Assembly: GCF_046119375.1 (NCBI RefSeq)
Contig: NW_027362772.1
Location: forward strand, 303,180,001-303,244,000
Length of the DNA: 64,000 nt
Source of the DNA: Phyllobates terribilis
Taxonomy: Eukaryota
Direction: 5' to 3'
The notes beneath the pieces are model-generated. The model did no database searches. It had not been told where the DNA came from and saw only the letters and a program-made list of their open reading frames with translations. This document shows positions 7,095 through 33,404 of the stretch, one piece after another. Made by a program: the position numbers and the translations under genes. Each line of letters opens with the position of its first letter. Within the stretch, counting starts at the first letter, position 1.

Positions 7095-7212
7095 CCGTCC
7101 CATGCAGATAGTCACGAGCCAATTCAAACAGTCTTAGGTGCATCACAGTGATAGGGTTAAAAGATCCTGTAGCGAGGAGTACAACCTCCATCCTCTCATC
7201 GGATTTCTCCAT
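7095..7212 (-). CDS. nmnat1: Duplicate first coding exon of NMNAT1 (exon 7095-7268 including 56-nt leader); downstream exons not in window
   Basis: Encodes [39 protein letters not shown], identical protein to 31190-31307 (one synonymous change); intact AG acceptor (7270-7269) and GT donor (7094-7093). Confidence 0.85.
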
Positions 7213-7485
7213 CACGTCTGCAGAATACCTGGATGTTGGGTGGAGGGCGTCAGCGTTACTGATTAAATCTACAGAGGAGGAAATGGAAAGGAGAAGAAAA
7301 AGGAGTGGAATCAAGATGGAATTACTCAGCCTTAGATTACCTGAGAAGTCATAAACCTATTATACGAGCTCCTTTGTGCTCATTTCCTGCAGAGCATCGC
7401 TCTTGTCTACATGCTGTGCAGGGAACCGCAGCAGAGCCCACTGAAGTGAATGGGCCTGTATTATTGTCCTCTGCACAGATATTAA

Positions 7486-7623
7486 AGGGCTACTCCATAC
7501 TTGGCCAGGAATAAGTGACAGATGCGGCCACATCTTCATTCTCATGGGGCATTTCGGACCCCCGTTCTGAAGATCAGTGGGGTCCCAGTGGTCGGATACG
7601 TTGCCAGGTTGGGGAATAATCTT
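7486..7623. mobile_element. Probable TTAA-flanked T2/Kolobok-type MITE
   Basis: TTAA AGGG... at left and ...CTT TTAA at right; imperfect termini; also present in the 31.5-31.7 kb duplicate. Confidence 0.45.
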
Positions 7624-8149
7624 TTAATTATTGATGGAGTCTCATCAGTCTAAGGAATAATGGGGACCCCCTCCCTCTCCGAACAGCAAATGATGGCAGA
7701 CCCCAGCAATCACGGGATGGAAGACCCCTTTGAAATGAAATAATTCCAGTTTTGCAGATACATTTATTCTGTTCTAGCTTTTGCAGAATTATTTTTTTTT
7801 GATCCGTCCACTCAAGAGATTCAGGAAAGCAGGGACCAGGCAGAGAAAGGGTTAACCGTCTCATGTCATAATAAGGGTGTTGTAATGCGGTCGGCTCTGC
7901 GTTATTACACCACGCACTGTACATGTATTCACACTGACCCCTGCACACATCGCACTTGGGTAAGGAAAAATGGGGTTAGAGGTCAGAAGAAAACCAGACG
8001 GCGGCCAAAACCGCGCAATTATTTAATCACAGCCGGACGAGCGACTGCAGCGCACGGGGCCACGTGGCCTCATATGTACAAGGATCGAAATTCTATGGTG
8101 ACCGATGTCTCGGCGTCAGGGTAAAAGCGCTGGCTGTATATGGACGGTG

Positions 8150-28859: not shown

Positions 28860-30488
28860 CAGTACAAACCAAAAGTTTGGACACACCTTCTCATTTAAAG
28901 AAATTTCTGTATTTTCATGACTATGAAAATTGTACATTCACACTGAAGGCATCAAAACTATGAATTAACACATGTGGAATTATATACTTAACAAAAAAGT
29001 GTGAAACAACTGAAAATATGTCTTATATTCTAGGGTCTTCAAAGTAGCCACCTTTTGCTTTGATGACTGCTTTGCACACTCTTGGCATTTTCTTGATGAG
29101 CTTCAAGAGGTAGTCACCGGAAATGGTCTTCACTTCACAGGTGTGTCCTGTCAGGTTTAATAAGTGGGATTTCTTGCCTTATAAATGGGGTTGGGACCAT
29201 CAGTTGTGTTGTGCAGAAGTCAGGTGGATACACAGCTGATAGTCCTACTGAATAGACTGTTAGAATTTGTATTATGGCAAGAAAAAAGCAGCTAAGTAAA
29301 GAAAAACGAGTGGCCATCATTACTTTAAGAAATGAAGGTCAGTCAGTCCGAAAAATTGGAAAACTTTGAAAGTGTCCCCAAGTGCAGTTGCAAAAACCAT
29401 CAAGCGCTACAAAGAAACTGGCTGACATGAGGACCGCCCCAGGAAAGGAAGACCAAGAGTCACCTCTGCTTCTGAGGATAAGTTTATCCGAGTCACCAGC
29501 CTCAGAAATCGCAGGTTAACAGCAGCTCAGATTAGAGACCAGGTCAATGCCACACAGAGTTCTAGCAGCAGACACATCTCTACAACAACTGTTAAGAGGA
29601 GACTTTGTGCAGCAGGCCTTCATGGTAAAATAGCTGCTAGGAAACCACTGCTAAGGACAGGCAACAAGTAGAAGAGACTTGTTTGGGCTAAAGAACACAA
29701 GGAATGGACATTAGACCAGTGGAAATCTGTGCTTTGGTCTGAGGAGTCCAAATTTGAGATCTTTGGTTTCAACCACCGTGTATTTGTGCGACACAGAAAA
29801 GGTGAACAGATGGACTCTACATGCCTGGTTCCCACCGTGAAGCATGGAGGAGGAGGTGTGATGGTGTGGGGGTGCTTTGCTGGTGACACTGTTGGGGATT
29901 TATTCAAAATTGAAGGCATACTGAACCAGCATGGCTACCACAGCATCTTGCAGCGGCATGCTATTCCATCCGGTTTGCGTTTAGTTGGAACATCATTTAT
30001 TTTTCAACAGGACAATGACCCCAAACACACCTCCAGGCTGTGTAAGGACTATTTGACCAAGAAGGAGAGTGATGGGGGGCTACGCCAGATGACCTGGCCT
30101 CCACAGTCACCAGACCTGAACCCAATAGAGATGGTTTGGGGTGAGCTGGACCGCAGAGTGAAGGCAAAAGGGCCAACAAGTGCTAAGCATCTCTGGGAAC
30201 TCCTTCAAGATTGTTGGAAGACCATTTCCGGTGACTACCTCTTGAAGCTCATCAAGAGAATGCCAAGAGTGTGCAAAGCAGTCATCAAAGCAAAAGGTGG
30301 CTACTTTGAAGAACCTAGAATATAAGACATATTTTCAGTTGTTTCACACTTTTTTGTTAAGTATATAATTCCACATGTGGTAATTCATAGTTTTGATGCC
30401 TTCAGTGTGAATGTACAATTTTCATAGTCATGAAAATACAGAAAAATCTTTAAATGAGAAGGTGTGTCCAAACTTTTGGTCTGTACTG
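28860..30488 (+). mobile_element. Second copy of the DD38E element, part of a 3,678-bp tandem duplication
   Basis: Same length (1629 bp), same frameshift and stop, same rare flanking satellite variants. Confidence 0.92.
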
Positions 30489-31189
30489 TACATTATATTA
30501 CTGATCCTGAGTTACATCCTATATTATACTCCAGAGCTGCACTCACTATTCTGCTGGTGCAGTCACTGTGTACATACTGTACATTACATTACTGATCCTG
30601 AGTTACATCCTGTATTATACCCCAGAGCTGCATTCACTATTCTGCTGGTGCAGTCACTGTGTACATACATTACATTACTGATCCTGAGTTACATCCTGTA
30701 TTATACCCCAGAGCTGCACTCACTATTCTGCTGGTGCAGTCACTGTGTACATACATTTCAATACTGATCCTGAGTTACAGCCTGTATTATACCCCAGAGC
30801 TGCACTCACTATTCTGCTGGTGCAGTCACTGTGTACATACATTACTGATCCTGAGTTACCTCCTGTATTATACCCCAGAGCTGCACTCACTATTCTGCTG
30901 GTGCAGTCACTGTGTACATACATTACATTACTGCTCCTGAGTTACATCCTGTATTATACTCCAGAGCTGCACTCACTATTCTGCTGGTGCAGTCACTGTG
31001 TACATACATTACTGATCCTGAGTTACATCCTGTATTATACTCCAGAGCTGCACTCACTATTCTGCTGGTGCAGTCACTGTGTACATACATTACATTACTG
31101 ATCCTGAATTACATCCTGTATTATACCCCAGAGCTGCACTCACTATTCTGCTGGTGGAATCACACTGTATTATACACGTATCCTCTTAC

Positions 31190-31307
31190 CCGTCCCATGC
31201 AGATAGTCACGAGCCAATTCAAACAGTCTTAGGTGCATCACAGTGATAGGGTTAAAAGATCCTGTAGCGAGGAGTACAACCTCCATCCTCTCATCGGATT
31301 TTTCCAT
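31190..31307 (-). CDS. nmnat1: NMNAT1 first coding exon (exon 31190-31363 including 56-nt leader)
   Basis: ATG at 31307; [10 protein letters not shown] nucleotidyltransferase motif; acceptor TGTAG at 31364; phase-1 donor joins exon 22203 in frame. Confidence 0.97.
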
Positions 31308-33404
31308 CACTTCTGCAGAATACCTGGATGTTGGGTGGAGGGCGTCAGCGTTACTGATGAAATCTACAGAGGAGGAAATGGAAAGGAGAAGAAAAAGGAG
31401 TGGAATCAAGATGGAATTACTCAGCCTTAGATTACCTGAGAAGTCATAAATCTATTATACGAGCTCCTTTGTGCTCATTTCCTGCAGAGCATCGCTCTTG
31501 TCTACATGCTGTGCAGGGAACCGCAGCAGAGCCCACTGAAGTGAATGGGCCTGTATTATTGTCCTCTGCACAGATATTAAAGGGCTACTCCATACTTGGC
31601 CAGCAATAAGTGACAGATGTGGCCACATCTTCATTCTCATGGGGCATTTCGGACCCCCGTTCTGAAGATCAGTGGGGTCCCAGTGGTCAGATACGTTGCC
31701 AGGGTGGGGAATAACCTATTAATTATTGATGGAGTCTCATCAGTCTAAGGAATAGTGGGGACCCCCTCCCTCTCCGAACAGCAAGTGATGGCAGACCCCA
31801 GCAATCACGGGATGGAAGACCCCTTTGAAATGAAATAATTCCAGTTTTGCAGATACATTTATTCTGTCCTAATTTTTGCAGATTTTTTTTTTTTTGATCC
31901 GTCCACTCAAGAGATTCAGGAAAGCAGGGACCAGGCAGAGAAAGGGTTAACCGTCTCATGTCATAATAAGGGTGTTGTAATGCGGTCGGCTCTGCGTTAT
32001 TACACCACGCACTGTACATGTATTCACACTGACCCCTGCACACATCGCACTTGGGTAAGGAAAAATGGGGTTAGAGGTCAGAAGAAAACCAGACGGCGGC
32101 CAAAACCGCGCAATTATTTCATCACAGCCGGACGAGCGACTGCAGCGCACGGGACCACGTGGCCTCATATGTACAAGGATCGAAATTCTATGGTGACCGA
32201 TGTCTCGGCGTCTGGGTAAAAGCGCTGGCGGTATATGGACGGAGCAGTTTTAGCTCCCATACAAGGCTCAGCCGTCCGTCTGTCTACTTTGGACTTTTCA
32301 TTAAAATGTTACCCTGATAATAGTCTAAATATAAGTGGTCCTGGTAATGGGACCTCCAGCGATCAGCTGAGACCTGTGGAGGAACTCAGAAGTGCTGCTC
32401 AAGTTTTCTGCAGCGCCTCCGCAGGGGGGGTGAAGCATTGCACAGCTCCCATGTGATACATTGTCAGGGTGGGTCCTCCAGAGGAGGATGTTCTCTGCTT
32501 AATTCTGCTCTCAGGTACAAATACTATGTGCATATACAGGTGCATGCATGCAACATATGCTATGTACACTCCTACTGATCGGAGCTTGTGCTGCTGCTTA
32601 GCAGATGGTCCAAATATTCATTACACTTTTGCATCCAATGTATTTGCTTTCATACATATGAAAAGTAAAAAAAACTACTTTGCATATAGTCTTGAGTAAA
32701 AATCTCCTACGTATACAGCCCCTACGAAGAGCAATGTGCCTCCAAGAGGACCAACTACAAATACCAAGTCGAGACTTTAGCTTCATGCTAATCTGCAGAC
32801 AGCAGAAAAGTGGCAGATGGATTTATAGCAGTCTCTTCCGACTCCCCCTTATACATGCACGCTGGACTCGACCGAGCATGCACGTGTATTCAATAAGAAG
32901 AGCGGAGTATCTCCATTCCGACATGGCAGGAGAGCCAGGAGTCCCCCATAAACACTAGACGGTCAACATATCTCTAAATTTTATGGCCACCTACACACAC
33001 GACTGTATGATCAAATACTAACCATGTTTACATGGTGATTGTCCATTTTTCCATGCAGCTGTGGATGTGACTGGAGTATAAGACATAATCAGTGGTGTAC
33101 CACCAATGGCGGCAGGCCACGCCACTGCTATGGGGCCCGTGAGCCGGGGGAGGGGAGGCTCCGGCCCTCAGCGCAAACAATGATGATGGAGGAGGGAGCG
33201 TCAGCAGACGTTTCCACCCCCATCATTCTGCCTCAGCGTCTGACGTCTCAGAACAGCGGACGCGATGATGTCATTACAGGGCGCCCGCTGCTTTGAGATG
33301 TCCGGCGCTTCACACCACACACTGAGGAGACTGGAGCATCGGGTGAAACCAGGAGAAGTGAGCACTGTATTTATTTATTTTTTAAATCAGTGACTAGTGG
33401 CCAT

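Follow-up and report, generated by a model that had tools for sequence, protein, structure and literature searches.

Extranuclear NMNAT enzymes are a key brake on axon degeneration driven by SARM1, and NMNAT1 has come to lie outside the nucleus by an accidental route, in the WldS mouse, and by an engineered one, as cytNMNAT1. In WldS, 70 residues of Ube4b are joined through 18 normally untranslated residues to full Nmnat1, following an 85-kb triplication that also holds Rbp7 (PMC2801506), and protection depends on the short stretch of Ube4b at the N-terminus (PMC2654131). The cytNMNAT1 protein is strongly axon-protective when overexpressed (PMC5063586), and the isoform-specific loop of NMNAT1 has been reported to be required for nuclear localization (PMC9299865). 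Read-through transcripts that link Nmnat1 to its neighbor Rbp7 are also known. In fish and mouse they omit exon 5, the exon 4 donor being spliced straight to Rbp7 exon 2, and chicken has a variant of this fusion (PMC4664474). Here, we describe the nmnat1 locus of the frog Phyllobates terribilis, based on a window of 64,000 nucleotides (GCF_046119375.1, contig NW_027362772.1, positions 303,180,001 to 303,244,000; the window is this whole stretch, and coordinates below count from its first letter). An earlier note on this DNA had proposed that it holds a partial tandem duplication of nmnat1 with the potential to form a WldS-like fusion.

Our analysis suggests that the second copy of the gene, copy B, is probably a young, redundant and promoter-less duplicate under relaxed constraint, and not a fusion gene of the WldS type. 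The locus is already annotated in RefSeq as two gene models. According to the explanation that we favor, a segment of ~24 kb would have been duplicated in tandem on the Phyllobates lineage, starting 0.88 kb before nmnat1 exon 2, ending somewhere past exon 5 and leaving the promoter and the two upstream exons, exon 1a and exon 1b, unduplicated. Expression of copy B would then need transcription from the shared 5' end through the upstream copy, copy A, followed by splicing of an upstream phase-1 donor to the acceptor at 7268, for which RefSeq models the junction of exon 1b to exon 2B. The predicted product would be a full NMNAT1 enzyme without the nuclear signal whose core is the residue triplet Lys-Arg-Lys (KRK).

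Structure of the duplicated locus

The window covers the lzic-nmnat1-rbp7 locus, with nmnat1 on the minus strand. In the RefSeq gene tables, the order is lzic, exon 1a, exon 1b, body A, body B and rbp7. The lzic gene, which encodes a 190-residue protein with an ICAT domain, lies to the right of the window, head to head with nmnat1, and rbp7, a lipocalin gene of 139 residues, lies 7.6 kb past the copy-B stop codon. Synteny of lzic, nmnat1 and rbp7 is thus kept, in an arrangement identical to that of Ranitomeya. The parts of the two copies are as follows; our own exon models were searched singly, never spliced together, and whole proteins are database entries.

31177 to 32241, minus strand: copy A side of the unique duplicated segment, comprising exon 2A, the 0.88 kb of intron 1 that precede it and the first 13 nt of intron 2
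7082 to 8146, minus strand: counterpart of that segment in copy B, with 98.0% identity to it
31190 to 31363, minus strand: exon 2A, with a 56-nt leader, the ATG at 31307 and a phase-1 donor after 31190
22020 to 22203, minus strand: exon 3A, entered in phase 1 and left in phase 2
21794 to 21930, minus strand: exon 4A, encoding the isoform-specific loop, in which the basic KRK nuclear signal lies, with a phase-1 donor after 21794
21266 to 21666, minus strand: coding part of exon 5A (21666-21269) and stop codon (21268-21266), matching NMNAT1 in the PDB (E=6e-58)
7095 to 7268, minus strand: exon 2B, with an AG acceptor, the ATG at 7212 and a GT donor after 7095; exact source of residues 60-118 of P0121, the RefSeq protein of copy B

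Self-BLAST, run after masking of the large minisatellites, and pairwise alignment showed that 7082-8146 corresponds to 31177-32241 over 1,065 bp, with 21 mismatches and no gaps (K=0.020). The offset is 24,095 throughout, as the earlier note had claimed for its tandem duplication, and a repeat of this kind is far beyond chance. On the 3' side, in the sense of the minus strand, both copies enter an 86-bp satellite (7081-6120 and 31176-30482), because of which the BLAST match stretches on to 6382/30487 while its offset drifts. On the 5' side, homology stops abruptly at 8146/32241, and the duplicated unit begins 0.88 kb upstream of exon 2. The limit near 8900 that had been given for the B side therefore lies ~750 bp beyond the end of unique homology. 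A search of the 8146 breakpoint revealed no terminal inverted repeats, and no clear microhomology was seen at the duplication breakpoint (8146/32241).

Copy A holds a complete NMNAT1 body of exons 2-5, with 279 codons from the ATG at 31307, and its exons 2-4 amount to 146 1/3 codons. These exons match consecutive parts of the Pfam profile PF01467. The N-terminal nucleotide-binding motif G-x-F-x-P-x-T/H-x-x-H is present in both copies of exon 2, whose Pfam match covers profile positions 1-24 at 19.9 bits, a score obtained with a query piece of 39 residues where the cut-off for the whole protein is 21 bits. Exon 5A matched NMNAT1 at the E value given above and NMNAT3 at E=1e-34 in the PDB. The C-terminal ISST-x-x-R motif was found, with the best match to NMNAT1 and not to NMNAT2 or NMNAT3; in copy B, this motif is seen only in the RefSeq protein. 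Exon 4, searched alone against solved structures, gave no match, and the alignment of its loop was taken from the RefSeq protein. The P. terribilis RefSeq protein 'NMNAT1-like' (P0001, 334 residues), first matched through the stop-free frame that holds exon 5, is a 100% match to copy A and consists of exon 1a (63582-63475) and exons 2A-5A.

Exon 2B has the same acceptor and donor as exon 2A and differs from it by three substitutions, two in the leader (7264 and 7216) and a synonymous one at 7207. The last of these is the GAA/GAG difference reported previously, which we located at 31302/7207, and the acceptor at 7268 is intact. Whether copy B has exons 3-5 to the left of the window had been left open. 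The answer is yes, as indicated by the gene tables and by P0121 (XP_073513382.1, 350 residues), the second P. terribilis protein in the cluster of P0001. This protein is composed of exon 1b (40881-40705, 100%), exon 2B (7268-7095, 100%, including the B-specific leader residues) and exons 3-5 that have no exact match in the window. Its gene spans 43,341 bp from 40881, so that the stop codon falls near -2459, ~2.46 kb beyond the left window edge, and the RefSeq protein and its coordinates place exons 3-5 of copy B ~1.5-2.5 kb past that edge. P0121 matched NMNAT1 in the PDB with E=3e-101, and its catalytic motifs are intact. Copy B thus appears to be a complete gene body and no fragment. Coding exons 2-5 are all duplicated, with only exon 1 and the promoter left out, and the duplication looks 'partial' only because the window ends where it does.

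It could be argued that copy B is an orphan exon 2, to which RefSeq has attached exons 3-5 from elsewhere, as none of these exons lies downstream of 7095 within the window. However, the gene range of P0121 is continuous on one record and runs ~2.5 kb past the window edge, and the implied intron 2B of ~8.6 kb is near the 9.0 kb of intron 2A. Furthermore, rbp7 follows copy B in the expected order, and the residues of exons 3-5 in P0121 are specific to copy B. We regard an orphan exon as scarcely credible.

An assembly artefact, in which two haplotypes of one 24-kb region were laid in tandem, would be in keeping with a genome that is very large and rich in repeats (PMC12208295) and with junctions that adjoin satellite arrays, which are hard to assemble. 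The published draft in that report is a different, short-read assembly and is silent on the nmnat1 locus. The present sequence has no gap between the copies: its sole run of Ns is 52397-52526 (130 bases), with none between 1 and 52396, and neither a gap nor a contig end of the kind that marks false duplications separates them. In addition, the copies differ by 2% and a deletion of 7 codons, the content of intron 2 differs, with a gypsy element only in copy B, and the upstream flank of copy B is the 3' flank of copy A and not a contig end. An artefact is therefore very unlikely.

The exon 2 leader and possible routes into copy B

The 56-nt leader of exon 2B consists of 2 nt and 18 open codons before the ATG at 7212, and the earlier description of it as stop-free and in frame with the ATG agrees with the sequence. 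Because a frame of 18 codons would be open by chance in ~40% of cases, this carries no weight on its own. The leader might also be taken for a 5' untranslated region that happens to be open, and here the comparison with other frogs leads to a different result. Long NMNAT1 isoforms annotated in at least a dozen frog genera read from an upstream ATG through the leader, and the 351-residue frame of the leader-containing form is also found in three frog mRNA contigs (L001-L003) that were assembled independently and lack introns. The frog long isoform natively includes the leader in its coding sequence; the leader is not idle untranslated sequence, and its open frame needs no special explanation. 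The ratio of non-synonymous to synonymous substitution rates was ~2 over 16 codons of the leader, compared with 0.56 for exon 1b and 0.03-0.15 for the catalytic exons. From these values, the leader appears to be weakly constrained and to behave as a linker.

Two exons upstream of copy A supply alternative N-termini:

63474 to 63582, minus strand: exon 1a, with the ATG of the RefSeq copy-A model at 63582, 36 codons plus 1 nt, and a phase-1 GT donor after 63474; tblastn of residues 1-36 of P0001 gave 100%
40704 to 40932, minus strand: exon 1b, an internal cassette exon with an acceptor before 40932, the ATG at 40881, 59 codons plus 1 nt, and a phase-1 GTGAGT donor after 40704; residues 1-59 of P0121 gave 100%

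Exon 1b encodes the N-terminal extension common to the frog long-isoform models. The first base of each of the mRNA contigs L001-L003 aligns with 40932, immediately behind a strong acceptor, and we therefore take exon 1b to be an internal cassette exon that would be transcribed from a promoter near lzic. Exons 1a and 1b are present in one copy each in the window, as determined by tblastn, and neither is duplicated near copy B. No convincing promoter signal was found for copy B, and the CpG profile showed no clear promoter. Because the duplication starts 0.88 kb upstream of exon 2 and took the gene body only, copy B would depend on the shared upstream exons.

Both of these exons end in phase 1 with G. 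The frame compatibility that the earlier note had seen arises because the acceptor at 7268/31363 is built for phase-1 donors. Its frame arithmetic was correct, as the donors at 31190 and 21794 are indeed in phase 1. Four phase-1 donors fit 7268, namely those of exon 1a, exon 1b, exon 2A and exon 4A, and each junction would make a GAT codon.

The start of exon 1a (63529-63582, minus strand) overlaps a palindrome resembling the cAMP response element, TGACGTCA, at the ATG, as well as two CCAAT boxes. The 36-codon open frame of this exon is conserved in Dendrobates and Ranitomeya, which may reflect elements of a bidirectional lzic/nmnat1 promoter rather than protein. The extension encoded by exon 1b (~59 residues) is basic, has no acidic residue before position 22 and is conserved from pelobatids to hyloids (P0002, P0003, P0005, P0006, P0009, P0012, P0014 and P0030). 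Its composition resembles that of an organellar presequence, and its amphipathicity is no better than that of shuffled sequence.

If transcription reads through copy A, splicing of 21794 or 31190 to 7268 would yield NMNAT1(1-146 or 1-39)-linker-NMNAT1-B, a protein proposed to act like WldS. The A-to-B frames are compatible, the RefSeq protein shows copy B to be full length, and copy B would in any case be reached only by transcription through copy A. Neither AATAAA nor ATTAAA occurs in the first 2 kb after the copy-A stop codon, and the first AATAAA after it is at 19243. There is also precedent in fish and mouse, where the exon 4 donor of nmnat1 is used with the exon 2 acceptor of rbp7, the following gene (PMC4664474), and in Anomaloglossus, for which RefSeq models an NMNAT1-RBP7 read-through protein. 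In this model (P0123, 550 residues), full RBP7 is joined to the long NMNAT1 isoform close to where exon 5 ends, an organization that resembles the chicken type of read-through; an exact look-up of the protein found no record. Copies A and B have the arrangement typical of transcription-induced chimeras, being neighbors on the same strand with a penultimate-exon donor and a downstream exon-2 acceptor in matching phase, and the 21794-to-7268 junction is a plausible, reasonable prediction. However, the sole model of copy B joins exon 1b, and not exon 4A, to exon 2B. The 1-146 fragment would keep the nuclear signal of copy A together with half a catalytic fold, and WldS requires a foreign Ube4b N-terminus (PMC2654131, PMC2801506) that is absent at the frog locus. 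As an account of copy B, a read-through fusion seems improbable to us. A search for the A or B leader in short transcript-derived protein fragments returned no frog fragments among the matches and says nothing direct on the use of 7268.

Age and divergence of the copies

Ranitomeya variabilis has lzic, a single nmnat1 and rbp7. One annotated gene each is present in Dendrobates and two Ranitomeya species, with isoforms of 357 residues (exon 1b), 334 residues (exon 1a) and 279/280 residues. Because these relatives have one gene, the duplication appears to be young and specific to the Phyllobates lineage, and K=0.020 fits this view. Older second copies of NMNAT1 exist in other frogs, with exon 5 identities of 73-78% (P0024, P0025 and P0031, 'NMNAT1-like' from Aquarana, Bufo bufo and Pyxicephalus), two of which show partial degradation of the basic cluster. 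The nmnat1 gene may have been duplicated repeatedly in frogs.

We polarized the differences between copies A and B over the 279-residue core, using Dendrobates and Ranitomeya as outgroups. Of the derived substitutions, 8 fall in copy B, which has also lost 7 residues by deletion, and 1 falls in copy A. Assuming ~636 non-synonymous sites and K/2 per lineage, ~6.6 changes per lineage would be expected under neutrality. Copy B would thus seem to be changing at a roughly neutral rate and copy A to be constrained. Lost with the deletion in copy B is the KRK core, which 101-102 of 103 vertebrate NMNAT1 orthologues possess and which aligns with the basic stretch in the loop of the solved enzyme. Consequently, a basic nuclear localization signal is found in copy A and is missing from copy B (P0121).

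The same changes can be read as the mark of selection. Copy B would then be a selected paralogue, a dedicated extranuclear NMNAT (cytosolic or organellar), with the 5' isoforms partitioned so that exon 1a serves copy A and exon 1b serves copy B. RefSeq does split the 5' exons in this manner, in contrast to Dendrobates and Ranitomeya, in which both isoforms come from single genes; this split may, however, be an annotation choice. The deletion of the KRK core is clean and in frame, the loop concerned is needed for nuclear localization (PMC9299865), and the catalytic motifs of copy B are intact, but the amino-acid sequence of copy B is changing at about the neutral rate and its open frame could survive 2% divergence by chance. 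The presequence-like composition of the exon 1b peptide, with its basic residues and its acid-free first 21 positions, stands against an amphipathicity no better than that of shuffled sequence. On balance, we consider a selected paralogue rather unlikely.

Several points nevertheless weigh against a redundant duplicate under relaxed constraint. The asymmetry of 8 versus 1 substitutions is only marginally significant (binomial p ~0.04). One of the copy-B changes, N167K, affects a near-invariant site and occurs also in the single-copy gene of Dendrobates; it is therefore tolerated and is no evidence of decay. The pairing of exon 1a with copy A and of exon 1b with copy B, together with the loss of the nuclear signal, could reflect a selected division of labor. 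Moreover, exons 3-5 of copy B are predicted from the RefSeq protein and its coordinates. A redundant, promoter-less duplicate is still the explanation that we think probable.

A bolder proposal is that copy B is the natural counterpart of the engineered cytNMNAT1, an extranuclear NMNAT that would be expressed from the shared promoter through exon 1b, with A-B chimeras as minor by-products. We hold this to be unlikely. As its most speculative extension, an extranuclear copy B might help the neurons of batrachotoxin-bearing frogs to tolerate chronic sodium-channel stress. Should copy B prove to be expressed, evolution would have produced an NMNAT1 devoid of the nuclear signal, whose localization and protective capacity are directly testable. 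A silent copy B would be an ordinary young duplicate and an annotation curiosity.

Repeats of the window and comparison with known systems

The repeats in and between the two copies are listed below:

22219 to 31176, minus strand: bulk of intron 2A, with 86-bp satellite arrays at 30482-31176, 26804-28866, 24518-25188 and 22219-23673
19659 to 20786, plus strand: inverted 86-bp satellite array, ~0.5 kb downstream of the copy-A stop codon and complementary to the arrays of intron 2A
8147 to 19658, no strand assigned: A-B spacer, with Ty3/gypsy fragments on both strands and a remnant of a Tc1-like transposase
6120 to 7081, minus strand: 86-bp satellite array at the start of intron 2B, found by self-BLAST
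868 to 4722, plus strand: degenerate Ty3/gypsy retrotransposon with gag, protease, RNase H, integrase and chromodomain, inside intron 2B and absent from intron 2A

Intron 2A is almost wholly 86-bp satellite, from 13 nt past its donor to ~15 nt before the acceptor region. An inserted element lies there in a 3.7-kb tandem duplication (24518-27497 versus 28207-31176, 97.4%) of an age similar to that of the A/B duplication. The inverted array at 19659-20786 is 94-95% complementary over ~1.1 kb to 22219-23673 and 26804-28866. Pairing of these inverted satellites in the pre-mRNA could loop out exons 3A-5A, which might favor skipping of body A. Neither rbp7 nor nmnat1 exons were found in the A-B spacer (8147-19658); since it holds no rbp7 exon, the duplicated unit is without rbp7 coding sequence.

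Very large minisatellites occupy intron 1 at 33416-34345, 36214-40095, 46485-48855 and 60981-62707. A G-rich 31-bp unit forms two arrays of ~30 and ~127 copies, and a different 31-bp unit is present in ~76 copies. The 31-bp arrays on either side of exon 1b are not inverted copies of each other, as their units differ. A 39-48-bp repeat that lies just inside the first intron has a GC content of ~75% and contains long runs of G. The flanks of the run of Ns (51801-53200) are the most CpG-rich windows of the region (observed/expected 0.84-1.04), and at 53266-58871 in intron 1, repeats of 0.6-1.4 kb with 91-95% identity are clustered in direct and inverted orientation; these are probably nested transposons.

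Compared with WldS, the frog locus likewise shows a tandem multiplication at nmnat1-rbp7, an 18-codon exon-2 leader that can be read in frame and a complete NMNAT1 downstream of it. In contrast, the frog unit is ~24 kb and holds the nmnat1 gene body only, whereas the mouse segment is 85 kb. Its leader is natively coding, where the mouse leader is normally untranslated, and the duplication placed neither Ube4b nor any other foreign 5' exon upstream. The WldS-like fusion potential claimed in the earlier note thus stands as far as the frames and the tandem copies are concerned; it falls short in that the sequence upstream of copy B, the 3' flank of copy A and transposon remnants, offers no 5' exons of a foreign gene. 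Such a fusion would be possible on paper.

The Nmnat1-Rbp7 read-through involves the same gene and the same strand logic, and in the frog the next downstream exon 2 is that of copy B, in a fitting phase. The partner would, however, be a second nmnat1 instead of rbp7, and the frog junction is a predicted one. At the paralogous locus, two proteins named retinol-binding protein 1 (P0147 and P0160) carry an NMNAT domain, which suggests that they are models of NMNAT3-RBP1 read-through; transcripts of that type were not found by reverse transcription PCR (PMC4664474).

The predicted protein of copy B resembles cytNMNAT1 in being an otherwise intact NMNAT1 without the basic nuclear signal. It differs in that its 7-residue deletion is natural and lies in a duplicate gene, and in that the modeled protein adds the exon-1b extension. 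To judge from these features, cytNMNAT1 would be a closer functional analogue of the predicted product than WldS is. With ordinary promoter-less young tandem duplicates, copy B has in common ~2% divergence, restriction to one lineage, asymmetric protein change and the need for the parental 5' end. It departs from them in that the upstream copy lies wholly inside the first intron of the downstream gene model. The locus is also a clean example of gene-body duplication, in which copy A sits within the first intron of copy B and the 5' exons are common to both, and it should be useful for studying the competition among read-through, polyadenylation and splicing.

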